The notes: generated by a model not told the origin, from the sequence alone. DNA of 20,802 nucleotides from Selaginella moellendorffii (GCF_000143415.4 NW_003314394.1:364484-385285); one strand, 5' to 3'. Positions 1,456-20,802 are shown, counted from the stretch's first letter. Program-made: numbers and translations.

Positions 1456-1479
1456 AAGCTCTATTTCGTTAAAGTGGGA
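1456..1479 (+). repeat. Left TIR (AAGCTCTATTTCGTTAAAGTGGGA), preceded by TSD AGAG at 1452-1455
   Basis: Exact reverse complement of 12029-12052. Confidence 0.95.
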
Positions 1480-1897
1480 ATTGTCATTATCCCACTTGTA
1501 AAATAAGGTTTCCAAACCTTTATATAGTATATAAATATAACAAAATTCAACTGCATTGAGGCACATGCCATTTTATTTTAAACAAGGAAATGTCTACTCA
1601 ATCACTTCTCCTCCCCCTGCCACTGCTTCACCTCTCTCTTCTCCTTGTCATCGTCGTCCAATTTCTTTCCATCCTTTTAATATTGGCTCAGTTGCTCCGA
1701 GTCTAGGTGGAGCCCAAGTCCCCATTGAATCTTTACTTTCCCATTATTAATAAAACAACTTCGTAGACTTCCAATAACATGCTGTAACACTTCTAGTACA
1801 ATGCAAATCCTCTCAAAGAATTGTCTTTTAATATTAATACAATGGCATGGAACCCCATGCCATAATAAGTTACATTTTTAAATAAATACATGCCATC

Positions 1898-2760
1898 TCA
1901 GACTGTTATTTTTTGCCTCCAACGCCTATACAATAATCTTGGAATTTCATCACTCTCCACACTATCAGGATTTAAACCCAATAGTAATGCCATCTCTTCT
2001 CTAATACGTCCACGCTCATGTTCAGTGGTCGAAGAACCCATCCGGTTGAGCAGATTATGGAGATGCGGATAGTGCTTGGCTAGACAATATACATGCCATA
2101 AATGATGACTGGTGTCTGTCCGATCAAATGGCTTCGGATATACCGTTCCATCTGCCATTTGGTTGATTTCTGCAGCCACCTCCTGGACTGGCCGGTTCTC
2201 TATCACCATCGCTCCAAGCCGTTTTGCAAGGTCCCCCAGAACATACGGTTTCTTCTCCCTAGTTTCCATACTGCAAGAGATGGGGTGCACTGCATATGTG
2301 TGCGTGTTCGCTGCAGTTTTAATCGGCGAGTCATCGATGATGAGGATTTCACTTGAGCTAGCAGTCCGGTTCATCACTACAGCCTCTGGCTTGACGAAGA
2401 TGGGCTTGCTACCCCTCACATGGACCATAGTCAAGCAATCCTCCTGCGTTAGGAGAAAGTCAAATGGTAATATTACTCGCGTCTGATCGTGCATCATCTG
2501 TAGCAACGTTAATGCATTGTGGCGCATCATGGATGTCCAAACTCCCAATTGCAAATTGAACCCGGCCCTCTGTTTTAAGTGTCGCATGGTCATTATTAGA
2601 TCCCGCAGTTTCTCCCGTGTGATTAATGTGAATCTGTCTCTTTTGACCAACTTGCGACCGCAGGCTTTGGAGGGTGCAATGACATTCGAGGACGAGCCAC
2701 GCTCATGGGAGAAAAGGACACCGTTCAGATCAAAAACGATACAGTACCTTCGCCGTGACT
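1898..2760 (-). CDS. FCP1/NIF-type HAD-superfamily phosphatase-like domain (last exon of the accessory gene)
   Basis: Motif I CIVFDLNGVLF, motif II GVWTSMMRHNA, KPIFVK, and motif IV ILIIDDSPIKTAAN...VHP. This is the DLNG variant seen in plant/fungal FCP1-homology proteins. Confidence 0.8.
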
Positions 2761-4740
2761 CTGAAATGAAATGCGTCAGCATAAAAAATGGTACAAGTCA
2801 ATTTTACCATCTACAATATTAGCGAATGTTGCTCCCGATGGTCGTTGAGAGGGTTTTGGTCGAGGAAACGTGAAGGGCGGAAATACTCTCCTCTGCAATG
2901 TGGGGTCAATCGCATCCGATGGCGTGTGGGCACATGCCATTTCAGCTGTAGACTCTGGTACAACTGGCTCAACAGTGGCATGGGGTGGTTCCGATGGCGT
3001 GTGATCACACGCCATTTCAGCTGGTGCCTCCGTTGGCAAAGTGGACATGACCGAACAGGCAGCAGGGGCGGTGTAGGGAGGTTCCAACGGCGTGTAGTCA
3101 GACGATTGGGCACACGTTGAGTCCGTTGGAAATGAGGATACGACCGGCTCGGCGGCTGGGGCGGCCTCATGTGGGTCCAATGGTGCCTGGTCACCGTCAG
3201 TTGGATACGTGGACAAGATTGACTCAGTGGTATGGGCAGCATCAAGTGGAGCGTGGTCAGCTTGCTTGGCGTTGATATGGATAGTAGCCTCCACCAGCTC
3301 TGATGACTCTTGCAGCCAAGTAGAGTCCACTGGCGGATCCATATGCATGTCCAAATATCTCCCTTCGATTGAGATGGTATCCTCCCGTGCTACTAAAAAC
3401 AAACTCATTAGCACATTGAATCGACTATACTGTATTTACCATCAACTGCTATTGAGGAACTAGGACCGATATCACTTGAGCGCACTGCTGATTCTGAAGG
3501 ATTGGACATACGTTTCGACCCTTGCTTGGCACTATCCTTCCTCGACACTAAAGGCTAGAGTTTGTAAATTCAACTGAATAATCTCTACTTACCATTTGCT
3601 CTGCGACCTACATGGACAATGTTAGAAATGGTAAAAGGTTAGGAATGGATGTATTATTATTTACCTGATGGTTTGTCTTGTATGACCTTCCTCCGCCGCT
3701 CTTTGGCCACCTCAGGCTGGCCATCGTCGTCATCATCGTCGTCGTCGTTATTGTGATCGTCACCATTGTGAGGACCATCCAAGTCCTCTTTGTCCTCCTC
3801 TTCTTCGTCCTCCTCTTCTTTGTCCTCCTCTTCGTCCTTCTGCTCTTCCTGCTCATTATCTTTCTCTGGCTCCTCATCCCCCTCCTGCATTTCTTCCATA
3901 GGCTGCTCAGGCTGGATGGCTTATTCTTCCAGGACCATCTTGGGAAAATCATCTGGCCGAGTCTCCATCTCAAAATACAAGACATCCATAGCCTGTTTTA
4001 GTGCGTGACCTAGGACCGTATCCTCACCCGACTGTCTTAACATGGTTTCTACACGTTCTTGCACCCTTCGAAGATGACGAGATGAGAAAAACGTGGCCCT
4101 GCCTTGAAAAGCTTCCCTCATCCATTGTACCTCTCCATTGAGATTGGGGAAGGGGAGTCCGCCATAGGAATCTGAGTCATGAGGTGGTGACTGCCTGCTT
4201 TCACTCAGCCCTTGATCTGCAATGAATGGCATGAGCACACACGCCATAACCGCGAGGCATTACCTATCATCTTTTCGTTGCCCTTCTTCCTTTTCGAATC
4301 AAACGCCTCTGATCTCGACGACTGTCCAACGTGCTTTCGCTTTTTATGACCACTGTCAGTTTGAGCTTGGCTGGTGCTTGCCTGTTTTGCCTTTGAAGAA
4401 GTTTCTCCTGCAAGGAATGGCATGAGACCACACGCCATTGCAAATATAATTTGTACCTCCTTTTTTCCTATTGCTTTTCTGTTTGTCCTTCTTCGATGCG
4501 CCACCAGTGCGCTTTTCAGTCCTCGTGTCTAAATATTCACAACGATCTATAATCAAAATGGCGTGAGGCCTCACGTGACCTTACCTTGTGCAGGTTGTGA
4601 GCTCGGCCCAACATGGGTATCTTCAACAGTAGCTGTTAACTCCGTTTCAGCATCTGGGGGTGGCCACGCTCCTGCATACAGAGCTTGTGAGATAACATTT
4701 AAACTTAAAGTGTGTACTCACCAGGTTCGCAGAGAAGATA

Positions 4741-5450
4741 CTATTTTTCTTTGGCAACTGTAATTATATGCTCCATTGAAGTCATCTCTTCAATGGAGTT
4801 TGTCACCGCAACACACAGGACACCCTTGAGTAGTGCGGCTCGAAAGAATAGTCCGCCGCAGTTGTACTCGACAACGCATTTGCCCTTGGAGTCGGAAGCA
4901 GGTGACCCACCCGCTATTGCGTTGAAGACCCAGCTGAGCATTTCCCATGCTGCACTTGGAGCTTTCTTTGGATTCGAAAGCTCCATAGCCGTCTTCAGTT
5001 CCTCAGGCACGGGTAAATTGACCTCCCTCAGATCAATTCGATTGGCCTTGTCGAACGAAGCTGGGAAGTCACTCTAGTCCCAATCTGCTGCAGGACCAAT
5101 AACAAGGGCGAGTGTGAAGATGCGGACATTCGTCGGTATCTTCTTCTTAGCCATTATCCCATGGATCTCCCGCATCTCCTTGCCTTTCAACCGAGCCTTC
5201 ACCTCGTTCAAGGCCTTCCAGAACTTGTGATAGGATTCGGAGTCGTAGATCATATAGTGGACTGAAGATTCCACCTCTGCAAGTCCCACCATTAAGTCAA
5301 TGATGGAGCTGACTTCGTCTGCATGAGTGATCTCCTCGTTTGTGAAGTCCATCACACAAAAGATGTTCTTGACCTGCTCATCTCTGCGGGAAACGATGCT
5401 CCTCCACCTTTGATCCTCATCCGAATTCAAGTATACCCGGTAAGGTTCTC
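4741..5450 (-). other. Degenerate beta-class (N4C/N6A) DNA methyltransferase-like region of the accessory gene
   Basis: The order IFCVMDFTN ... KKAPSAAWEMLSWVF ... GKCVVEYNCGGLFFRAALLKGVLCVAVTN resembles DPPY ... KP..l..li ... gd.VlDpF.GSG...AA...gR..ig.E. The catalytic and SAM-binding residues are not conserved. By-eye similarity only. Confidence 0.4.
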
Positions 5451-6100
5451 GATAGGCCTCTGCTGCGGGGTCGAGCTGTTTCTGAAGCCGGCGGTCGACA
5501 TCAATCTTAATGAAATTTGGATACTGATCCAACTTCTCAGCTTTACTTTTCGTGGCATCCCACAGCAGATCGATGAACTTGGGGGCCCCCTTCACGTACT
5601 CGTCGATGTCTTCATTTGACAACTCCAGCGCTTCCATCATCTCTTGCGTGGTGTCGATGCTCACCCTCTCCACGGCCACTTGCTCGAAGATCCAATCCTT
5701 CAATAGCGCACGAGCTCTCAGAGTCGTGCACAAGTCCTCGTATGTCACAATATGGCCGGGAGTCATTTTGGTCTTGTTGAAGACAACCTCACCACGTAGA
5801 AGAGCATTAGCCACTGTCAGAAGGTCGTCGTCGTCTAGAGACCGCGAGAAACACAAGGCGTTGAGCTTCAAATCATTGGGCTTCCGGCCGTCCTCCACAC
5901 CCATTGAGTTTGGTAACTCCCCGTCATGGTACCTCCTCAGCACATCTACCCATTTGTCAAAAACAACTTTTGTCGCGAGTAGAATGTTATGGATGCTGAG
6001 TGTGTCATTGACCCCCAGTGTTTTCGAGAGAAGACTCGAGAATTCCTGCAATGGAAATGGCGTGAGGCCACATGCTATGCCACATAAAAACGAGGCTTAC

Positions 6101-6620
6101 CTGCCAGGCGCTAGTTGCTAGTGCACGTCCTTGTCCTGGTTTTTGTAGCTTCTTCAGTTGAACCCAGAGCTTCCGTGTTCGTGCCAATGTCTCGTGCAGA
6201 CCCGATTTGTAGCACGTTTCTTGCTTGACATTCTGCGCGTGGGAGATGTATATGATAGATCGGAGGGGCGAGTTGCCTTTTATCAGGCGGACAACTCTTG
6301 TCTTGAAGACTTTCTTCACCTCCTCGCCCACCATAATATCCACAACTACCTCTTGCATCACCAAGCTAGAATGCTGCCCGGAGACGGCATAGAACCGGAT
6401 GTTCTGATCGTCCAACACCTTCCTATTGATCAAGTCTGGAAACCTCATCTCGCCCTTCATTCGTCTGCGATGTCGGGTGTTACTGGACTTGCCAGCATCT
6501 TCTGCTTCAATTTCTCCACCCACTCATCAGATACTAGCCTGTGGTTGTATTTGCTTTGGATGTCGATACGGCTCACGTCGATTGTATATACTTTGTTGGA
6601 ATAGTAACAAGTACTATTAT
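6101..6620 (-). other. ParB/Sulfiredoxin-like domain of the accessory gene
   Basis: VYTIDVSRIDI...NHRLVSDEWVEKLKQKML ... FYAVSGQHS ... VVRLI ... IIYISHAQN matches the ParB pattern i.i..I ... R.......l..L..si ... y.ii.G.HR ... v.v ... l.eN. A frameshift near 6460 interrupts it. Confidence 0.6.
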
Positions 6621-7502
6621 CTGCGACGATTTTTGCTGCCTCTTCTTGCTCTTTCTGCTCTTTGCGGCTCTTCTTTTTGGTGGGTGTAGTGTTCGAACCC
6701 GAGGCAATGGCATCACTGAGTAGCTTCTTTTTTGGAGCAGGAGAGTCAGACGTCGGCTTGAGCTTGACCACCCTTTTCTGCTTCGAGGTAGTTTCCAGAT
6801 CGACCCCCTTCCCCTTCGCTTCGCGAACTGGAGTCACTCTCAACGGCTCAATGTTGGAATATAGTTTTTGAACATCGCCGTAGGTGAGGTCCGTGTATTC
6901 CATGTGATCTTCATAGACCCACAGCGTCTTTGAAATTGTGGGCCTCCTGGACAACCTCTCCCTAGCTCCCTCTAGGAATTCCTCATAGCCGCTGCCCCCC
7001 TCCGGGAAGCCGCTAGGATGTGCAAGGTGGATCTTGAAGGCAGACGCTGTCTCTACCACAAGTGCCAGTCCATATTCTTGCATGGAACTGCATGGAGTGT
7101 CTGTCACTTGGATGAGGATCCCCATGCATTCTTTTCTCCCACCATCTGTGTTGTACAGCCTCAGATCCTCGCCTTCCATCCCGAAAGTCCAACTGGTGAG
7201 CTCCTCCCCCTTCTTTGCATCCACATTGACAGTGGCTGGAAGAAGAACGCAATTCCTCGCCTGTTCAGAAATGCACAACAATTAGAGCTGACAGATGAAA
7301 AGCTAGCAGCTGGAAATAACGTGAGGCCACACGCCATTCACCACTGCATCAGATGTCTTGAGGCTGCATCCTAAGATGGCGTGAGGCTACACGCCATCTG
7401 TAACCGGACTGCACTCGAGAGCCCAATCGGTGCATGCCAATGTTGCTACTGAATGGCATGTGGCCTCATGCCATTTTCTACTTGGCCTAAAAGACTTACC
7501 AT

Positions 7503-8294
7503 TTGAAGCCGAATGGAGGCGTGACAACCGGACTCGCTGGCGAATGTGCACTGTGTGTGCAGCGGATGATGTGACAAAGTTCAACCTCCGACACAAAGTC
7601 TAGAAGCTACTCAGTTTGAAATTTGTCAGAGGAATCATAAGATCTGGTTTGTCAGAGGATTTGATGTGACGTTCAAGCGTGTGTTATTTTTGAATTCTCG
7701 AACTCATTCCTAGGTCTATCATTTTTGTGCGCCGTGTTCTTGGTTCCGCTGAGCGCAGTGAGCGCTGCTTGTGTAAGCGGCGTTGTGAGCTGTGGTTTAT
7801 GCGTCTACAAGCGGTTGCGGCATTGCGAGCGCTATTGCGAGCGGCAGTTTATGCGAGTGGCAGTTTGTGCGAGCGGCGCTACGAGCAGTTGCGGTGTTGC
7901 GAGCGGCGCTACGAGTAATTGCGGTGTTGCGAGCGGCACTGTCTTTGGTGTGGCTACCGCTTCCTCTTGATATTCGGCACTTGTGCTTCCTGGTATGTTC
8001 ACCATGGAATGGTTTAGAACCACATTTAGAAATGGCATGAGGCCACATGCCATCTTGGGCCCTTGCAATTTCATGGCTAGCGTATTGTCATGTATGTTTT
8101 TACTTGCCTGCAGCTGTGTGTATATCAAGATGGCATGAGGCCTCATGCCAATTTTGTGAATGCGAAATTTCACGTGGGTGTCAATAGCATGTTTGAATAA
8201 TGGCATGTGGCCTCATGCTATTTGGTATGTTATGATTTAGGCCATTCTCCAATCATTTTTTGTATGGTCTTAACTTCTTTTCTGCACTTTCAGA
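7503..8294. promoter_or_regulatory. Divergent promoter / 5'-leader region shared by the two transposon genes, with a probable 5'-UTR intron
   Basis: It lies between head-to-head ATGs (7502 -, 8295 +). A direct repeat tttgtcagagga is at 7622-7633 and 7648-7659. An acceptor tttcag ends at 8293, with candidate donors gtatgt at 7993 or 8225. Confidence 0.6.
7810..7940 (+). repeat. CpG-rich tandem repeats (TGCGAGCGGC core; 30-bp unit x ~2.3 at 7869-7937)
   Basis: gcgagcggcgctacgagcagttgcggtgtt / gcgagcggcgctacgagtaattgcggtgtt / gcgagcggc, preceded by shorter variants. Confidence 0.85.
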
Positions 8295-11200
8295 ATGGCC
8301 TTCAGGGTTGGGGAAAAGGTTTACATTTTGAATGGTGGGAAGAGAGTTGCAAAAGGGACCCTTGTGTCTATGGATCGGAACTTTGTTATACACTGTCAAA
8401 GGCTTGGGGAAGGCAATGCTGCTGTATCAGTAGAGACTGTCTTCGATGGGAATGTGGTCGCTATTGAACGAGGAGAGATGGTCGTCGGGGTAAATGTTGT
8501 TGTTGCCTTGAAAAATCTGCAGAAGAAAGCAGATGTTGGGGACAACGCAAGTGCGACGCATGTTCCCTCCGTGGATCTTAAGAACCGTGCTACATGGATT
8601 CAAGCAAAGGTGTTTCTAAACAACCCCGAGGGGGAGGTGGTAGCTGAGGGCTTAGCCACAGTTGTCGATCCAAGAGATGCGGTTGCTAATCAAGAATTGG
8701 GCTGGGATGATATTGGAGTTGCAATTTTAGAGGTTGTTGACACAGAAGAAAACAGTCTGACTATTGGAAGCATTGTGCGGTGGAAATTGAGGCACTTAGT
8801 GTTTGAGAATGTGAAGGATTCACAATCAAACACCACTACAACTGATGACAGAACATCTCTTCATGGGAAAAAAAAGTACACCTTCCTAAAGCGCAGCCAA
8901 AGGGATCTGAGCAACGAACCGAAAAGGCAGAAAATGGCGATGGAGGTTCGAATGGTCTCGACAGTTGCTTGTTGCAAGAGGAGGTGCTGTCAACATGCTG
9001 ATTGGGATGCTATTGAAGAGGAGAGAGCAAGATACAAGACATTGTCCTGGAAGGCAGCTCGCAATTTTGTGTATGAGGCATTACGGTCATCTGTTGATGC
9101 TTCAGAACATCAGGTGGGGGGCATGGTCTTCCAGAGGGGTTTGGTCTGCATGAAGGCATGGAGAATCATTTATGGAGTCCCTCGAAGCACATTCTACAGA
9201 ATCAAAACTGAGTTCGAGGAACAAAGGGTTCAACAGGTAGTCCATGGGAACGACGGTACGCACAAAACCAGGGGTCATGTTGTATATGGAGAGGCAATCT
9301 TCAAGAGGTTTGTCGAGACATGTAGCGAGCAGCAACCACATAAAACCCGCCTCTTGGAAGATGGAACACGAGACACCCAACGAGTTCTCCCTTCCATGTA
9401 TACCAAGGGGGCCATATTGGAAGATGTGAATCGGGAACTCCAGAGTAATGGCTACAGGAAGCTGAGCCAATCTAGATTTAGTAGATTGTGGAGCAACAGG
9501 TTCAGGGATGTGAGTATAGGAAAGTACTCCAGCTTTTCAAAGTGTGACGAGTGCACTGCTATCAAAATGGCTTTGTCGAAGAATTCTTGCAGCGCTCAAG
9601 AGCGAGAGACGTTGGTTAGAAGGCGGCTCGACCACAACATCGAGCAGAGAAGCTGCAGGACTGCATATTATCATAACAGGATTCTCTCCATGGAGAGACC
9701 TGACTCTTACCTCTGCATCATCCACGACAAAATGGACCAGAAAAAGACGTGCTTACCTCGACTCAATCCTGCCCCCAAGGCAATCTCTTCATCCATGCAG
9801 CTGCCTGTGTCTCTGTTTGGCATAATCGCTCATGGGCATGGTGCCCAGAACTATGGGAACTTCTTTGTACCTCTATGGGGTGGCGGGGGTGCAAACATGA
9901 TGATTGCGTCCCTAGCAAAACACTTAAGGTCTCTGCAAAGTGCGCAGACTGAGCTGAACGGCCAACCCTTGCATAAGGCCCTTGTCGATCGAACCCCATA
10001 CAGGGTTCAGCTGGAGGAGGAGCAAAGGCTTGCAGTATCGCGTGGGGCCCCATGCCATCCCAGTGAATATGTTGGCCGTCAGATTGTAGGGTTATCACGT
10101 GAGGCCTCATGCCATTCCGACGAGGCTGGTCGCCCGGTGAATGCACAGCCTCATCCAAACGAAGCAGAATCTCAAGGAAGTTCTTGCGGCCGATGTGGCC
10201 TTCCACCCCATCTTCTGCTCCAAACAGACAATGCTGGCAGTGAGAACAAAAACATGTACGTCTTCGCGTACTTGGCGATGCTTGTTGCCAAAGGCATATT
10301 TGAAACGGTTACACTTGGCTTTCTCATGGTTGGGCACACTCATGAAGACGTCGATGCCATGTTCAGTCACCTGGCAGAGTCCCTCCGGCGATCCAATGTC
10401 CTCACCCTCCCACAACTCTACGATGAATTCCAAAATTGCATCAAAGGCACTGTTGAAGCTGCACTTGTGACAGAGGTTCCAGACTTTAAGGGGTTTGTAA
10501 GAGGCTACATCAGGGACGGATCCGAAACGCTGATTGGCCACTCCAAGCCTCTTCAGTTTCATTTCAGCATGCGTGACGGTGCTCCAGTGATGAGGTACAA
10601 GATGAGAGAATGGGACACAGTGTGGCTGCCAGTGGACGGCATTGAACTCTTCAAGAGAGATCCCATAACTGGGGAACCTATGATTCCTCAGGGTTCCCCA
10701 CGGCCAATGCACCCGGATGGACTCAAAGACCAGGAAAGTATAGTGGCCGGGATTAGACAGCATATTGCCTTCTGGAAGAGGGGGTTGGTGTTTGGTGGAG
10801 AATCCTATTTTAAGAGGTGCAAGCCTTTGCTCGAATACTGGGAGAAGATTATATCTGCTATCCAAAATGGGCCGGTTGTATATGAAGAATTGGAAGAGTC
10901 CTTTTGGCCAGAACCCAGAGCACCAGATAGTAGCGGAACAATGTCCTCTGGAAATGCAGTGACAGATAACGATGTTGAGGATCATTATTGTGGGCCGAGG
11001 AACAAGAAGCCGGATTCAGCATTCAATCCAGTACAGGTCTGCAAAGGAATGGTCGTGCTTGTCAGACCCAGTAATAAAAAACAAATGATATGGGTGGGGC
11101 GCTGCATCACTGATGCAGAGGAGGACGCGGAAACTAACTCCTTCAATGTAACTGTGGAGTGGTTCAAGCCAAGTTCCGGATATACGAAGGATTGCCTAGA

Positions 11201-11436
11201 AAAGAGATGGGTGTTGAATCCAAGGGATCCCAGCATGAGCATATTGGTGGATAATGTTGTGCATGGTTGGATGCGGAAGCAGAGTGCCACCATCACCTTG
11301 CCAGACCATGCAAGAGATGCAGCAAGAGCATTCATAACCCGGGTTCAAGGTGAGATTCATTAATATTCCTTTACTAAGTTTCTAATGTATTTTATTTCAA
11401 GGTGAACAATCCGAATCTGAATCAGAGGAGGCGTGA
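8295..11436 (+). CDS. Sola-like / DUF7869-type DDD transposase, ~1029 aa (exons 8295-11349 and 11402-11436)
   Basis: Uninterrupted ORF with CCKRRCC, VCMKAWRIIYGVPRSTF (HTH-like) and SKCDEC..H (Zn). Putative catalytic aspartates lie in CIIHDKMDQKK, LLLQTDNAGSENKN and FLMVGHTHEDVDAMFS. A probable 52-nt phase-1 intron (11350-11401, gtgaga...ctaat...tttcaag) gives the C-terminus GEQSESESEEA*. Confidence 0.85.
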
Positions 11437-12028
11437 TGGCATGTGGCCCTTTGCACTAGTATATCTTAATACTGGTCTGAGAAATAGAATGGCATGTGCC
11501 CTCAGGCCTTTTACTAAATCACCTTTGAAAGAAATGCAAGCCTCTATGTCGTAAAAAAAAGGTACTAGAGAAATTCCTTAATAATATGAATGTTATTTAG
11601 TTTTATGAAAATACACTAAGGGTCAAATGAGTTAAATGACTTCTCCAGACTAGCAATGCCTCTTGCTACACCTTCACAATTAGATTCGTTAGAAAAAGAT
11701 AACATTGAATAATATCTAAATGTTCTCACCATTAAGTTATATGTCTGGCTAATAGGAATGACGTTCATCTTGGAAAGCTCACCACACGCTCAATGAACAA
11801 ACAAATAGTGTGTGCGCGCATGCCATCGCTCTTCTTTAGCTTCAGATTCGGCTTGTTCACCTTGACAATGAGATTTATTATACAACCAGATGGACTCAGT
11901 CTGGACACAAAGTCACCGCGCTAGTCACCATGCCCCAGATATGTCTAGCCCCTAGACAAAAAACATATAATTTCACGTCATTTTCAAATACTTGAAAATT
12001 TGTACCTAGTCCCATTTTACTGAATAAA

Positions 12029-12052
12029 TCCCACTTTAACGAAATAGAGCTT
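12029..12052 (-). repeat. Right TIR (TCCCACTTTAACGAAATAGAGCTT), followed by TSD AGAG at 12053-12056
   Basis: 24/24 match to the left TIR in inverted orientation. Confidence 0.95.
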
Positions 12053-13329
12053 AGAGGGTGTTTCTCCATTGGACTATAACTCTTGCCTTGGATTTCATGC
12101 TCAGGTTGCATTACCATTTGTATAGAAATTTTTCACTTGGCTCAGGCTATGTTCTAGGTTATTTGGCCCTTCCCTTACTATTACTCTACCCCACACATTC
12201 CCCCACCCATTCTATATCATCTACACTCACAGATCCACCACCAATCATTTTTAGTAGCATTTTCTACACTTACTTCCAAATGCCCGTCTTGCATCTTCCA
12301 TTCTTTCACCATTGTCCACATAGGTCATATTTACTCCATACCATGGACACAAATACACACACCGGTAGCAAAAGACATCACCTCATTTAAACATGTTGTT
12401 TTCAAAATATCATTATGACCATTTTCTGATGACGTGCTAGCTTTTCTAGAGTGACTTTCTTTCAACCAGATGAACCCATTCACTCAAAGCACCTAGGTGG
12501 ATTTTTAGGCAAGGCCACAGAAGTTGAAGCCACTTTCTCCTGCTCTAGCACTCAGTGGACATATACCACCTATCTTTACCAGCAATTCAGCGATTATGTC
12601 ATCCTTTTTTGTTGTGGTTTTCTTTAATCTGACATATCAGACTATAGGTTTGACACTTCTAGAGATGGCCACCTTCTCAAAGTGCCACCACCATCTTGGC
12701 ACTCCACCATATCACTCCATCTTTCATCATTTTTACACTTCCCACCCTTGGGTAATGCATTCCCTCTTCTACCTCTCTTTTTTTCTCGATTCGGCCAATC
12801 CTTACTTGAAGTCATCATGAGGCAATATTTGCATATTACACTTTCTTAAGGCAAAATTCAGGTACAGGTCTTTGGGTTCTCACTTTTTTTGCTTTTATTT
12901 TCTTTCTTTTTTCACACAGTTTGACTATAGAGATTTCTATTGGGTTTTCCACTCTATCTTCAAACTTCACCCCTACCCCTTTTCTGTCTTTTTCCATTTT
13001 ATTTTCCAGAGTTTCTACTAGTTCACGCAGTGACCAAGACTTGGCATTAGCAGCAAAGGTGCACTCTACACTTTTTGGGGGGTTCTCATGCATCTAGAGC
13101 TGGCAAGATCCACTGTGTGGGTGGGGGGGAGAATATTCCAATTCTTAGAATATTCTTTATCTTCCTTATATAAAACCCTTGCCCCACAAGGGCAAAGGGG
13201 GGGCATTTGTGGAGAGTATTAGAGCATTTTTTCGTATTTGAGCAAGTGTTGGGGGAGTGCCCTTCCTCCCCTCAGCAACTATTTGAAAGTAATTTTACCT
13301 TTAATAGACCAAATGAGAAAAAAAAAATG

Positions 13330-14190: not shown

Positions 14191-14923
14191 GTGAGTTAAT
14201 TGTTACAACACAAAAACCGTTAGAGGGATCAGAAAAGGAAAGAGCGGAACAAGACAACAATATAGAAGGATGTAATGGGGAGACAAAAGTAATGGAAGCA
14301 GAGGTAAAAACGTAGGGACGAAGAGGTACAGAAGTGAGAAGAATGGATGAAATATAAGGAAGTATGACACAAGGGGATAAAGTCTCAAAATCACACTTGA
14401 TATGATTATGTTACAATTAATCTATACCAAAAATGAGGTCAAAAGCTTGACTCAGCATCACCCGCAATGACTACAATTCAAACTCGAGAATGCCTATATG
14501 CATAACTAAGTCCGCCTCATCCCATGCATATGCATATGTACGGTTGTTGCCATAAAGAATTGGTTTTGCCACACAACGTAAATGTAGATGGCAATATGTG
14601 GCAATAGGTCAAGCAATAGAAGATAAACTTGAACCTGTATGTAAGCTTTTGAATTTAGACTTCCTGGGAGGTCAGTCAACCTAATACTATTCAAACCCAA
14701 GGATGCTTAACCCTAAATATCCCAAGGCCCTTAACCAATTGGAAAAGAGGGTGCACTCTTATTCATGGGCCCTTTCCCTCTATATTTGAACTCCATAGAT
14801 CGTCTCTCGAATCATTCCCTTTAGTTGCTTACAATCCACCATGCTTCCTTGTAAGTTCACGCCCTCATGAACGAAAGCTGAGAGCCACAGCTCTCCCAAG
14901 AGCCCTGCTCTCTTAACACCCTA

Positions 14924-15863
14924 TGTAGCGCACCTGAATTTAGAGCCATACTCCAATCCCATTGCACTACGAACAAGGATCTGGTACAATCCCACGAGCA
15001 CCAACTCCCCGTATCCAGCACCTGCACGCAAAATGGTGTCAGACGGAGTCTGACACAATTTTGGCATACCGGTGGCCTAATGCGAGGAGGGTACTCCACC
15101 GACTAGAGCAGCGTGGAGCTTGGGCTTAGACCCAAGCCGGATGCAAAACAAGGAGCAACACAGCCCAGCGGGAGTCAAACTAATGTCTCAGGTGGTCGGA
15201 CATGCATTCCAACCACTATCTCTACTATACATTTGGAACCCCCCACAGCCCCCCCCCCCCCTCCCCCCCCCTCCCCCCTCCCCCTCTTTGAGGAACACAC
15301 GCTTTGGGCTTTCACCCCAAGCCTCCCTTAGTACCAGGAGTTAGTCTCTGGGACAAACTCGAAACTTACTAAATATGGAATGTCTTTAGATTGAGAATTT
15401 GGACACGGGACGAACACCATTGTGTTTAGGCTGATCTCTACATTCCATAGATATGCTAAATGAGCAAATCTAGACACTTTCCATAAATAGCATATGGGAC
15501 CGAAATGAGACCAACACTAAGGGCATGATAGCAAGGGTGTTTAGCAGACACGGTAAGCTATCATTTAGTGATATTGAGGGACTAGTCTCAATACGTAGGG
15601 GTTCTTGATACTAACAAGTGCAAGCTAATGACACGAGTTTCTCAAACCAGGCCAAGTATGCTCAACAAGAAACACATAAGGTTCCTACCTTATGTTTATC
15701 CGATTTAAGTACACGGTCATTGACCAGTTTCTCAACTAGCTCAAGTGGGAACAATAAAGGGAACCAACTGTATTGACCTTCTGCCGTCATGGCAGTAAGG
15801 AAAGAGTGTCTGTAAGGATTAGCCAACAAGTATCTTTCGACACCTGAAGTCACATTCGCGACA
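14924..15863 (-). repeat. 3' LTR (~940 bp)
   Basis: Ends TGTAGCG...CGCGACA form an imperfect inverted repeat. It abuts the PPT at 15864-15876, and its left end matches the sequence from 20756 onward. Confidence 0.8.
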
Positions 15864-16473: not shown

Positions 16474-19400
16474 TTAGTCTTTATTACTATTCTCATACTC
16501 CGTGACAAGCTCATGAGCATGTGTAAGATTCCTAAGAGGTTCCCAAGTTAATTCACAAGTTGGGTAACCTTTCCACTTAACTAGATATTCCTTGGAATGA
16601 CCACCACTAGCTTTGCGAGACAAGAGAATCACTTTGACCTCATACTCCATGTCACCATTCACAACATCCGGAGGGGGACGAATGTCCACAGAGCGATTCG
16701 TAGCAACATGATATGGTGCTAGTAAACTGAAATGAAACACATCAGCCCTAGACCAACCTTGGCGTAGCTGCTCCGCATAAGTCTCAACAGCCAAGACCAA
16801 CATTTTGGACATAGGTTTCGGTACAACGATTTGTTGAGGAACCCCATGAGCATTCCCTTGCAGCATCTCCCATGGAGAACAGTCTATAGCACTGTGAAAT
16901 GTGTTGTTATAACATATTTCTGCTGTATCCAAATGCTCAACCCAATCGCGTTGGTCTGCCGCAACATAGTACCGCAAATAATCCTCAACTTGAGCATTCA
17001 CGCATTCGGTCTGCCCATCAGTCTGAGGATGATAAGCTGTACTAAATTTTATCTTGGTACCAAACAGCTGGAACAATGTGCCCCAAAACTTCCCTGTAAA
17101 CCTTGAATCCCTATCCGAGATCATTTTTTCGGGAAGACCACGAACCCGCACGACTTCATTGAAAAAGAGCTTTGCTGCTTGTTTCGCATTCACTGTTCCC
17201 ACAATTGGAATGAAGTGTGCAATCTTCGACAATCAATCCACAACCACCATCAAAGTATCATAACCCTTAGACTTTGGCAAGCAAGTGACAAAATCAAGTG
17301 TCACACAGGAACGGATATAATCCGCTATATCACCTTTCATACCAGACCAGAAAAATCCCTTTTTCAATGAAGCCAGAGTCTTTCGTTGTCCACCATGTCC
17401 CGCTGCTGGAACATCATGATATTCCTGCAGAAACAACTGTTGTAGATCCTTAGAGGGAAGATACAATCTTTCTTGTTTATAGAATATAAGCCCATCCCGA
17501 ACCGAGAAGTGAAGCTTTGCATTGGTGCGGTTAGCAACTTTCCCTGCCTCACTATCAGAGTTCTGCTTCGACAACTCTGCACGGCATAAGATTGCTTTCG
17601 CCAATGAATCACTTCCATACGAAGCCCAAACGTCCTCCAACCAGTCCAAACTGATTGCCGATATTGCCCAAAATTAAGCTTGACGACTGAACGCATCCGG
17701 AACAATATTGTCTTTACCAGGTTTATATATGATTTCAATATAATATCTAGAAAGCTTCTCTTGCCAACGAGCCTGCTTTGGCGTAAGCTTAGGTTGCGTA
17801 ATAAAGTAGCTTAGTGTGTTACTATCCGTATAAACCTTGGTATGTCCACCCAAGTAGTGTCTCCAGTGTTCTAGGGCCGACACTATAGCAAACATCTCTT
17901 TCTCATGCGTTGGCCATCTTCGTTGGGTCTCATCCAATTTCTTGGAATAAAACACAACGGGACAACCATGTTGCCTTAGCGTAACACCAACCACTTTGTC
18001 ACAATCTTGCTGTAACACGGCACCAATAGCATAACAAAATGCATCACAATGCACTTCGAAGGGTTTATCAAGATTTGGGATCTTGAGAACAAGAACCGTA
18101 GTCAAGATCTCCTTCAACCGTACAAAAGCATGCTAACAAGCTAGTGTCCAGTGAAACGGAATACTACTCTTCATCAACTCAGTCAATGGAAGAGCAATTC
18201 TTGCAAAATTGCAAACAAACTTGCAATAGTATCCCGCCAAACCAAGAAAGGAACGAATATCTGATACAGTGGTTGGAACTTCCCAGGACTTCACTACTTC
18301 CACCTTCCTTGGATTGACCTCAATTACGCCAGCACTAACTATATGTCCGAGAAAGTTTACGTGCAATTTTCCAAAAGCACATTTACTTTCCTTAGCATAC
18401 AGTTTGTGTTTGCGCAACTTCTGAAACACCAGCTCCAAGTGTTTCAAATGATCCTCCAATATTTTGCTAAATACTAGAACATCGTCGATGTATAGGACAA
18501 CAAATGTGTCCAAGTAATTTCTAAATATTCTATCCATCATAGTGTTGAACATTGCCGGAGCATTGCATAACCTGAACAGCATGACAAGGAACTCATAAGA
18601 TCCATACCGATCCTTAAAGGCTGTCTTCTCCACATTCTGATTTGCCACCTGTATCTGATGATACCCGGACTGCAAATCAAGTCACGTAAAATACTTAGCC
18701 TTTAAGAGTTGGTCAAACAATTCATCAATGCGAGGCAAAGGATAACTGTTTTTAACCGTGATCTTGTTGAGTGCCCAATAGTCAATACACATCCTAATAG
18801 TTCCATCCTTTTTCATAACAAAAAGGACCGGCGCTCTATAAAGTGACTTGCTTGGTCATATATGACCTTTGTCAAGAAGATCCGTGAGTTGCTTCTTGAG
18901 TTCAGCCATCTCTTTGATGTTCAACCGATATGGAGCTTTTGTAGGTGGTTTAGGACCCAGAATAACCTCAATTCGATGATCAACCTCACGACTAGGAGGT
19001 AGCCTTGGCGGAAAATCCTTTGGAAAGATATCTTGATTCCTCACCAACAACTCCAATATCCTCTTTGGTACAGGATCAACCCCGTCGCTGATTCGAACTG
19101 AGTCACCAACACCCTCAGCTTCCATCACTTGAACCCAAAAGGTATGACATCCCCTCTTAGCTGCTTTTTGAGCGGCCCTCGCAGTCAGGAACTTTGCATC
19201 CCAATCCTTTAAGGAACGCTTTTGCAACTGAAAGGATATATCAGGACATCCTTCTGACTTCAACGTGATATGACTTTGTCTAGCACCATAAATCTTTTTT
19301 ATATACTTGTTGAAGAAATCCATACCAAACACCATCTAAAAATCTGGTATTTTCAACACTACCAAGTCCACTTTTTCTTTCCACTTGGATATCTTTATTG

Positions 19401-20565
19401 GAACATCACTCATAAACTTTCTGGCTACTTGCCCACCTTTCGCAAACTAGAAGTGCATAGGCGACATTTGCTCAGCATTCAATCTTAACAACTTAACTAA
19501 GTCTTCAGATATCATGTTGTGTGTAGCTCCCATGTCAATCATCACTCGGATTCGGTGTCCATGAACAAAGCCTACTAGATACATCAACGGATCAGTATTT
19601 GCATTGAGTACATGAAAAGCTTGAGGAAAGCAACAAAAGTTACTCACCTCTTCTTCCTCATAGTCTGCATTGACCAACTTGTCAACCCCTTCAGCTTTAC
19701 CACCACTGTCTTCCCTCATGACATTAACCCGAGACCTTGTCTTATGCTTGTTAAGACATTCCAAAGACCTATGTCCCAACTCTCCACAATGGAAGCAATG
19801 ACCCACACTACCTATTCCGCTAGGAGCAAGTTTTGCAGATTGCTGCTACTTGCACCCACCAGGAGGAAGAACAGAGGGCCTAGGACCAGAAGAAGCTGCT
19901 GGTGGTCTCCAACCACCACCACCTTTGTTAACCGTTGCTTGTGAGCCTCCAGAGCGGAACCTGCCTTCCACACTCTATTTCCGATCACCTTGTTTATTCC
20001 TAGAATTTTTATTCTTATCTGAGTTACCAACATATGATTGCTAATATTGTTCCATGAGCGAGTGACTAAAGGCAACTTGCTGCGCTGCCTCCTTACACTC
20101 CAAGTACGTCTTTGGCTTAAACTTCAAAATCTCATTACAAGAAAGTGAACTTAAACCCTCCAGTTAATAACTCCGAGCATCTTCGTCACTCATATTTGCA
20201 ATCATAATGCACTTCTGAGCAAACGCATTAACGTAATGCATGAGATCCCCTCGTGCAACCAGGGGCAACTGTAGAACTTCATCGTCCTTAGAACTCGAAG
20301 AGGAGTCCGGTTGCTTAGGCTTAGCTGGTTTAGCTGCCTCAGCTTCTTTCTTCCTCTTCTTGTTCTCCTTCTTCAATTTGCGGACCTCCCTTTGCAAATT
20401 CTCAATCTCGACTTCCTGAGCCGTATGTTGTAACGCCGCAGCATCTGGCTCTTCCTCTTCCGACTTAGCCTCAGCCTCTTCCACAGCATCTCTAGCAGGA
20501 GTTTCCTCCTCTCGATTCACCCATCTAGAGGTTTCAGCATCATCAGCACAGTTCCTCTTCACCAT
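16474..20565 (-). pseudogene. gag-pol pseudogene of the chromovirus
   Basis: CCHC knuckle CFHCGELGHRSLEC; protease IDMGATHNMIS; RT VLYIDDVLVFS; RNase H FEVHCDAF..AIGAVL, EKEMFAIV and DNIVPDAFSR; integrase YHDVPAAGHGG, ISDRDSRF and YHPQTDGQTE; chromodomain YEVKVIL...EYLVKWKGYPTCELTWEP. Multiple stops, frameshifts and deletions. Confidence 0.93.
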
Positions 20566-20741
20566 CCTGCTAGCTGCATGCATGCCTCTATTAGTAACTG
20601 AACATGCATACAATGTTCTTACCGAATGGTGCTATCCAACTAATCCTACATAGGTCGCTTCGGATCTACTAGAAAAGTCTCTGCGTATGCAACTTGAGTT
20701 AGAAAATCCGACAAAAGTTGGATAGGAATCGCTGAGACAAT

Positions 20742-20753
20742 CCTTTGATACCA
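20742..20753 (-). promoter_or_regulatory. Primer-binding site (tRNA-Met-like)
   Basis: Minus-strand TGGTATCAAAGG lies 2 nt from the LTR end (...GCTACA). Confidence 0.85.
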
Positions 20754-20755
20754 AA

Positions 20756-20802
20756 TGTAGCGCACTTGAATTTGGAGTCGAACTCCAAGCCCGTTGTGCT
20801 AC
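20756..20802 (-). repeat. Inner end of the 5' LTR (partial)
   Basis: tgtagcgcacttgaatttggag... aligns without gaps to 14924-14970. Confidence 0.88.

Follow-up and report, generated by a model that had tools for sequence, protein, structure and literature searches.

Dispersed palindromes in a Sola-1 transposon of Selaginella moellendorffii and palindrome arrays in its transposase-only relatives

Element-encoded proteins bind the 12-bp motifs of En/Spm (through TNPA), the subterminal repeats of Ac/Ds and Hermes, and the internal palindromic repeats of piggyBac, and thereby assemble or regulate the transpososome. In Arabidopsis, the anti-silencing protein VANC of VANDAL21, an element of the Mutator superfamily, recognises short motifs that have built up in the non-coding DNA of the element, and motif and lineage co-evolve rapidly. 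In the bacterial ParB-parS system the site is dyad-symmetric, and fusions of ParB to methyltransferases (MTases) occur in phages and plasmids. Two descriptions come closest to the locus studied here. A 2025 article in Genome Biology (PMC12477816) describes the Ectocarpus element Sola1-1_Ec32, which has on the opposite strand a gene for a ParB-like DNA-binding and DNA methyltransferase protein; its authors suggest that this protein may bind and modify its own element, and refer to earlier work on green and red algae. A preprint (10.1101/2025.02.11.637652) describes Plavaka elements of the red alga Bostrychia in which the ParB-like protein PAG3 is encoded beside inverted-repeat arrays, and explicitly proposes self-binding. 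Here we analyse a stretch of 20,802 nt from Selaginella moellendorffii (the window), in which positions 1456-12052 form a transposon of 10,597 bp with a transposase gene, a divergent accessory gene and many copies of one palindrome. An initial annotation of this DNA had paired the palindrome with the accessory protein as a self-recognition module and had known of no earlier description of the architecture. Both the two-gene architecture and the proposal that a ParB-like accessory protein binds its own element were published in 2025, and this headline claim is therefore not new. Our comparison with related loci suggests that the palindromes belong to the Sola-1 superfamily rather than to the accessory gene.

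Direct reading of both ends of the element confirmed the perfect 24-bp terminal inverted repeats (TIRs) and the AGAG target-site duplication (TSD) of the initial annotation. Its description of a two-gene TIR transposon of Sola type with an intact DDD transposase also stands, the transposase open reading frame (ORF) being free of stops and its catalytic triad conserved. The features concerned are the following.

1452-1455, unstranded: left TSD AGAG, matching 12053-12056 (direct reading)
1456-1479, + strand: left TIR, AAGCTCTATTTCGTTAAAGTGGGA (direct reading; inverted-repeat pair of 27 nt at 96%, the first 24 perfect)
8295-11363, + strand: Sola-1 DDD transposase, 1022 aa, single intact ORF (ORF, Pfam, homologues)
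12029-12052, - strand: right TIR, exact reverse complement of the left (direct reading, inverted-repeat pair)
12053-12056, unstranded: right TSD AGAG (direct reading)

The transposase matches the Pfam family DUF7869 (E=2e-42), and the triad D478, D645 and D687 is conserved in the homologue alignment as well as in Sola1-1_Ec32. Its homologues are a small unnamed set with 27-36% identity and the common motifs IIHDKMDQKKT, LQxDN..ENKN and MVGHTHEDxD. Compared with the curated transposase core of Sola1-1_Ec32 (QVDNTVAENKNNY...TVTLCFMMVGHTHIQIDQIFS, supplement of PMC12477816), 28 of 55 positions of the catalytic core are identical (~51%, counted by eye). According to the same source, Sola1-1_Ec32 has a 4-bp TSD, AACCG..CGGTT termini and Sola1-1_PPa as its best match in Repbase. 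The termini read AAGCT..AGCTT in the window, and AACATG..CATGTT in the relative L027, whose long imperfect TIRs of roughly 500 bp start with AACATG, so that the leading AA is the only part common to all three elements. We assign the window element, on these sequence characters, to the Sola-1 DDD cut-and-paste transposons because of its 4-bp TSD, the DUF7869 match, the identity with the Ec32 core, the 5'-AAG termini and the TIRs of L027. A conserved GTGGGAA motif at the ends of relatives was considered and rejected as not general. The N-terminal half of the transposase has a conserved Cys cluster and a helix-turn-helix that is weakly detected at the conserved GISKxTFYRYK. At the N-terminus (8295-8800, + strand) there is also a sub-threshold match to Pfam Transposase_23 (TNP1/En/Spm; E=0.02, and E=0.097 for P0011).

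The element is like Sola1-1_Ec32 (PMC12477816) in its Sola-1 transposase with closely similar catalytic motifs, the 4-bp TSD, the AA termini, its large size and the second gene on the opposite strand. It is unlike it in length (10.6 kb against 21.5 kb), in its TIRs (24 bp against 282 bp and imperfect) and in its accessory gene (~1640 codons against a protein of 1104 aa). Moreover, the accessory gene of the window has an FCP1/NIF-like domain at its end, no profile detects its ParB and MTase parts, and in the present copy it is a pseudogene. Dispersed palindromes are not mentioned for Sola1-1_Ec32 in the portions of the article that are accessible.

A second copy, L001, was found in a public read assembly and is 98% identical to the window element. 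Its right end falls at the same base and is followed by an unrelated flank resembling a long interspersed nuclear element (LINE; reverse-transcriptase-like). Since L001 ends at the identical base in a different flank, the boundary and the mobility of the element are real. L001 (1-3577) is a deletion derivative without the equivalents of window 8304-8545 and 10428-11918 and with a further deletion of 7 nt (10198-10204); it retains the palindromes matching window positions 8130, 8200, 10037 and 10094. Between the transposases of the window and L001 there are 17 synonymous and 15 non-synonymous differences (dN/dS roughly 0.3), and a transposase paralogue in UniParc, P0014, is 98% identical. Judged by these sequences, the transposon family is one that was active recently. 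The observed/expected ratio of CpG is 0.67 in the element and 0.27-0.50 in its flanks, which consist of other repeats. The genome is rich in repeats, depleted of CpG and short-introned, and on the sequence alone would probably be placed with the bryophytes or other early land plants.

The palindrome has the form ATGGCRTG-N6-CAYGCCAT. At up to two mismatches it has 16 matches, all within 1842-11826, and none of 100 dinucleotide-preserving shuffles contained any; at up to four mismatches there are 20 sites, all within 1550-11826. Exact half-sites number 29, every one of them inside the element, and 10.2 kb of flank holds none. The initial annotation had counted ~19 palindromes confined between the TIRs, in agreement with the 16-20 obtained here depending on the mismatch limit. 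The sites are distributed as listed below, where accessory exon numbers count a possible 5' exon as the first, so that 7260-6101 is exon 2 and 2760-1898 is exon 11.

1550-1863: two palindromes downstream of the accessory stop codon, at 1550 (degenerate) and 1842 (perfect)
2919-3015: in-frame pair of palindromes at a spacing of 75 nt in the low-complexity exon 10, which reads AEMAC[AD]HTPS there
4226-4579: palindromes at 4558, 4417 and 4226 in three consecutive introns (38, 49 and 47 nt), one each
6057-6078: one palindrome in the 55-nt intron 6100-6046
7316-8221: seven palindromes (7316, 7376, 7453, 8032, 8130, 8200 and a degenerate one at 8004) in the divergent intergenic/5' region, directly upstream of the transposase ATG
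10037-10115: in-frame pair of palindromes at a spacing of 57 nt in a length-variable transposase loop between the first and second catalytic Asp
11397-11865: 3' region with a 47-nt inverted repeat (11397-11443 / 11819-11865) that encloses or adjoins degenerate palindromes at 11436, 11489 and 11805

Within 1 kb upstream of the transposase ATG lie 7 of the 20 palindromes, which is the position occupied by the arrays of transposase-only relatives. The four intronic copies each stand just before the 3' splice site and fill about half of their intron, while the pair in the transposase loop is also present in L001 and is read as coding sequence in P0014. In the window lineage the palindromes have thus spread to nearly every tolerant stretch, namely mini-introns, untranslated regions and two in-frame low-complexity loops. 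Among the copies the outer bases of the half-sites are conserved and the 6-nt centre is variable. The R and Y positions are the two CpGs of the dyad and occur in all four combinations, as expected from independent CpG decay; this decay to TpG/CpA suggests, from the sequence pattern, that the sites have been methylated. Between the palindrome clusters of the divergent intergenic region, 7817-7938 is a tandem repeat with a period of ~30 nt (GCGGYGTTGCGAGCGGCGCTACGAG...).

We fetched 84 loci with relatives of the transposase from other genomes, several of them with up to 10 kb of flank on each side; many come from environmental assemblies, presumably of moss or peat samples. Searching them by tblastn with all accessory exons yielded no accessory homologue in any of the 84, and two of the loci, L006 and L007, have in common only a transposase unit of 3.65 kb. 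The 0.5-2.5 kb directly upstream of the transposase were screened for perfect copies of one 7+7 dyad. Arrays of 3-11 perfect copies were present in ten relatives (L002, L003, L008, L010, L024, L027, L030, L031, L036 and L050), compared with at most two copies in the control regions of any locus (ORF, downstream, far flank) and at most one in 100 dinucleotide shuffles. The dyads of the relatives are 18-26 bp long and differ between lineages.

L008: dyad ATTTGGCCATATGGCCAAAT
L010: dyad AAGGCTCAAACTTGGGTTTGAGCCTT
L036: dyad CCCACGGGTGAACACCCGTGGG
L027: dyad TTTCCTCTCGGCCGAGAGGAAA
L050: dyad TACGAACGNNCGTTCGTA
L002, L003: dyad TTATCGTCGNNNCGACGATAA
L027, 3795-4736: dyad TTCCTCTCGGCCGAGAGGAA
L030, 1111-1335: dyad TTCCAGTCGACCCACTGGAA
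L031, 3-158: dyad TTCCACTCGACCGAGTGGA

Each dyad is confined to its own locus and close relatives (L002/L003; L010/L009; L024/L019/L032/L037; window/L001). The transposases of L002 and L003 are 85% identical and go with one dyad in common, and those of L027, L030 and L031 (86-91% identical) go with dyads that differ by mirror-symmetric substitutions. The array of L027 is located within its TIRs, and L036 has further dyad copies 3' of its transposase. Because at least ten transposase-only relatives carry arrays of their own and none has an accessory homologue, the palindrome arrays are probably a trait of the Sola-1 superfamily, tracking the lineage of the element and independent of the ParB-like gene. 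The pairing of palindrome and accessory protein that the initial annotation had proposed, with their co-variation among relatives as a check, is not borne out, as arrays are present without the accessory gene.

Taken together, the comparison favours, with some confidence, an autonomous Sola-1 element whose palindromes are a Sola-1 cis element, most likely read by the transposase, and whose second gene is a lineage-specific cargo. The window palindrome (22-24 bp) would be the lineage version of general Sola-1 dyads placed between the left end and the transposase start. The transposase is the simplest reader because it is the only protein common to all these elements; a transposase dimer is predicted to make contact through the Cys-rich, helix-turn-helix region at its N-terminus, and the sites would gather the transposase on its own element for end pairing, transpososome assembly or control of the divergent promoter. 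The second gene, a putative cargo of ~1640 aa with an FCP1/NIF-like end, would be dispensable for the existence of the palindromes and is inactivated in the present copy. Several points weigh against this explanation. That the transposase is the most likely reader is drawn from co-occurrence, and the TIR is unrelated to the palindrome in sequence, so that the transposase would need two specificities. The spread of the site over the whole 10.6 kb, accessory introns included, exceeds the needs of end recognition; it would suit coating or marking, a function that in this lineage a ParB-like or MTase-like protein may yet serve. Among full-length relatives with enough upstream sequence, about half have no array under the strict 7+7 perfect match. 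Furthermore, the arrays of L030, L031, L036 and L002 are plain tandem repeats, and part of the copy number is therefore due to tandem amplification.

The accessory gene lies on the strand opposite to the transposase. The initial annotation had described it as a divergent multidomain gene of 11 exons; we find ten exons, a possible eleventh and an FCP1/NIF-like domain, whereas the ParB and MTase labels are not supported and the gene is broken in the present copy.

1898-7260, - strand: accessory gene, ~1640 codons, ten exons and nine introns, all junctions GT-AG
Accessory exons, - strand: 7260-6101, 6045-4722, 4671-4585, 4546-4457, 4407-4264, 4216-3665, 3607-3593, 3547-3440, 3392-2808, 2760-1898
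7511-7509, - strand: ATG at which a possible eleventh, 5' exon would end
6455-6465, - strand: frameshift in exon 2, inside the part called ParB-like by the initial annotation; the frame moves by one, with no GT-AG intron restoring it
5076-5074, - strand: in-frame TAG in exon 3 (spliced frame)
4743-4741, - strand: in-frame TAG near the end of exon 3; the frame runs on correctly over the next intron
3923-3921, - strand: in-frame TAA in exon 7 (spliced frame)
2300-2746, - strand: FCP1/NIF-like HAD domain in exon 11 (Pfam NIF PF03031, 27 bits vs cutoff 21.8, E=4e-6, residues 18-166 of exon 11)

The nine introns measure 38-57 nt and are all in phase 1. From 6460 the spliced frame is open over 1376 codons save for the three stops, a length that cannot be due to chance. 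With one frameshift and three in-frame stops the accessory gene is a pseudogene in the present copy, and these four disabling lesions contrast with the intact transposase of the same copy. A reassigned genetic code as explanation of the TAG, TAG and TAA codons was rejected, because the 1022-codon transposase ORF contains none of them in frame; so was the alternative of reading the frameshift at ~6460 as a very short intron, the sole GT-AG candidate being 48 nt long and leaving the frame unchanged. Where the adjacent introns 4456-4408 and 4263-4217 hold their palindrome and 3' splice site, 28 of 31 bases are identical, a likeness that suggests either duplication of an intron or exon or an inserted unit made up of palindrome and splice acceptor.

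The FCP1/NIF-like domain is the only accessory domain with tool support. It reads DLNGV where FCP1/SCP phosphatases have DxDxT/V, and this is a conserved variant rather than decay, since P0055, the only relative to be found, reads DMNGV in this position; the two also have WT(S/T)MMRHNA and LLTQEDCL motifs in common. Their sequences suggest a NIF subfamily of its own, which may be non-catalytic. For the ParB and MTase-like parts named by the initial annotation, there were only empty searches with profiles, against the Protein Data Bank (PDB) and with AlphaFold2 and Foldseek. No ParBc or related profile matched in Pfam (E up to 10), NCBIfam, PHROGs, PADLOC or PDB sequences, where the frameshift splits the domain and lowers sensitivity. 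The candidate ParB box reads SGQHS, without the arginine-rich GxxR/GERR nucleotide-binding box, and the AlphaFold2 model of the ParB-like piece 6101-6460 was unusable (mean predicted local distance difference test score 33). No N6_N4_Mtase profile matched 5077-6096 or 4744-5073 in Pfam, NCBIfam, PHROGs, PADLOC or PDB, nor did the accessory profile alignment A4 find any match in PDB. Where motif IV of an MTase would read (D/N/S)PP(Y/F/W), the window has DFTN and the homologue P0051 has DLRR. A by-eye likeness to motif I (FxGxG) is seen in VVEYNCGG...AALLKG of the window and VEYGCGG of P0051, some 40-50 residues short of where the homology stops. The N-terminal half of the accessory protein would, at most, have a motif-level likeness to ParB and beta-class MTase proteins of other algal transposons.

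Accessory homologues are very few. The clearest, P0051, is encoded by a solitary gene of 451 aa among ordinary plant genes of Selaginella moellendorffii (GL377575.1; L004 10001-11425) and has homology with the accessory protein over the latter's middle and motif-I-like part. Its neighbourhood holds no transposase, ParB-like part or FCP1 part, and its AlphaFold2 model, of low confidence at motif I, had no match in PDB by Foldseek. P0051 may be a relative belonging to the host or a fragment that has been domesticated. Word-based searches with accessory exons 5077-6096 and 1901-2797 gave nothing relevant; their one match, P0055, is a host-type NIF protein on a gene-dense contig with ordinary cellular genes. 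An exhaustive HMMER search with 5077-6096 gave six weak matches: P0050-P0053 cover the N-terminal part of the exon, the alignment of P0054 is poor, and P0049, with its RTX repeats, looks spurious.

If the accessory protein were the reader, it would be a ParB-like dimeric binder of the dispersed palindromes that loads or spreads for anti-silencing, transcription control or bridging of the ends. By eye, its N-terminal half follows the order of ParB-MTase fusions, with a ParB/Srx-like part (...VYTIDVSRIDI...RFYAVSGQHS) followed by the motif-I-like sequence that P0051 has kept, and the palindromes fill nearly all non-conserved segments, including four of the nine accessory introns. Precedents are the Ectocarpus Sola-1 element with its opposite-strand ParB-like/MTase gene, for which PMC12477816 records a proposal of self-binding, and the inverted-repeat arrays adjoining PAG3 in red-algal Plavaka (10.1101/2025.02.11.637652). 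However, equivalent lineage-specific palindromes occur in transposase-only relatives, and the 84 related loci hold no accessory homologue. Pfam, NCBIfam, PHROGs, PADLOC, PDB and fold searches returned no ParB or MTase signal, the arginine box of ParB is replaced by GQHS, and motif IV is DFTN and not DPPY. Moreover, the gene is broken in the present copy, in which palindromes and transposase are well kept. We regard this explanation as unlikely.

The palindromes might instead act by their structure in DNA or RNA. As hairpins or cruciforms they would multiply through slippage and tandem duplication, or supply or draw in small-RNA pathways, and nothing but the dyad symmetry would be under constraint. 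Symmetry is always kept in sequences that are wholly different between lineages, the mirror-symmetric changes among L027, L030 and L031 are as compatible with base pairing as with dimer binding, many arrays are tandem, and the in-frame tandem duplications of 57 and 75 nt in the window carry the palindrome. Each stem, however, spans just 8-9 bp and encloses a 6-nt loop, and neither an Rfam nor a tRNA scan gave a match in the window. Conserved outer half-sites around a variable 6-nt centre are the usual pattern of protein half-sites, and CpG-to-TpG decay is independent in the two arms, which implies that pairing is not strictly maintained within the element; a structural role is in our estimate quite improbable. 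The densest cluster, in the divergent promoter region 7316-8221, and the position of the relatives' arrays immediately upstream of the transposase ORF would also fit sites of host transcription factors, serving as enhancer or promoter modules for two divergent genes. But the palindrome differs from lineage to lineage, even within one sample (L002 and L003 versus other loci), and is therefore not as expected for a common host factor, and copies also stand within introns and coding loops and beyond the 3' ends of both genes. We consider recognition by host factors very unlikely.

Reading of the palindromes by the transposase, the explanation that we prefer, corresponds to the mechanism of the TIR transposons that have subterminal repeats; these too have multiple short element-specific motifs inside their ends. 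The motifs of the window and its relatives differ from subterminal repeats in being long perfect dyads concentrated upstream of the transposase and not at both tips, and in the window lineage they run through the whole element. The VANDAL21 system differs in that the VANC sequence is unrelated and its targets are short tandem repeats, compared with 22-bp dyads with CpG decay in the window. With ParB-parS and the ParB-MTase fusions the locus has in common a similar site length and, by eye, the order of a ParB-like part and then an MTase-like part with a C-terminal motif I; it is unlike them in lacking any ParBc or N6_N4_Mtase match, in the GQHS box and the DFTN at motif IV, and in the occurrence of palindromes in relatives without such a protein. 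The Plavaka elements with PAG3 are likewise eukaryotic DNA transposons and gave rise to the same idea of self-binding as the initial annotation. Their transposase, however, belongs to the Plavaka/KDZ-type superfamily, PAG3 has a 2OG-oxygenase domain in place of an MTase-like or FCP1 part, and the repeats are tandem arrays beside the gene, whereas the window palindromes are dispersed through introns and ORFs.

What sets the locus apart from the known systems is the FCP1/NIF-like C-terminus, the apparent loss of catalytic motifs and the presence of palindromes in mini-introns and in-frame loops. The frequent occurrence of palindrome arrays among Sola-1 relatives that have the transposase only may be a new observation; no statement of it was found in the literature to the extent that it was accessible. 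If the arrays are general in Sola-1, they offer a testable handle on self-recognition in a poorly studied transposon superfamily, in which L027, L030 and L031 represent natural specificity swaps and form a series for the evolution of specificity. The window also shows that such sites can colonise introns, and coding loops where these tolerate them, in the genes of the element itself. A speculative and rather doubtful extension is that the Sola-1 dyads form a fast-evolving, lineage-specific self-recognition code, which here has become element-wide, reaching splice-competent mini-introns and in-frame coding loops, and is coupled to a chromatin-directed accessory protein (ParB-like, inactive MTase-like and FCP1-like) at the same sites.

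Outside the element, the window contains a decayed Ty3/gypsy chromovirus at 16474-20613 (- strand) with protease, reverse transcriptase, RNase H, integrase and chromodomain in several broken frames. It is flanked by a 58-nt direct repeat of 78% identity (14913-14970 / 20745-20802), which may be the remains of its long terminal repeats. In the left flank, the perfect 24-nt direct repeat GTGTAAGGGATAGGATCCTAACAT occurs at 1-24 and 291-314.

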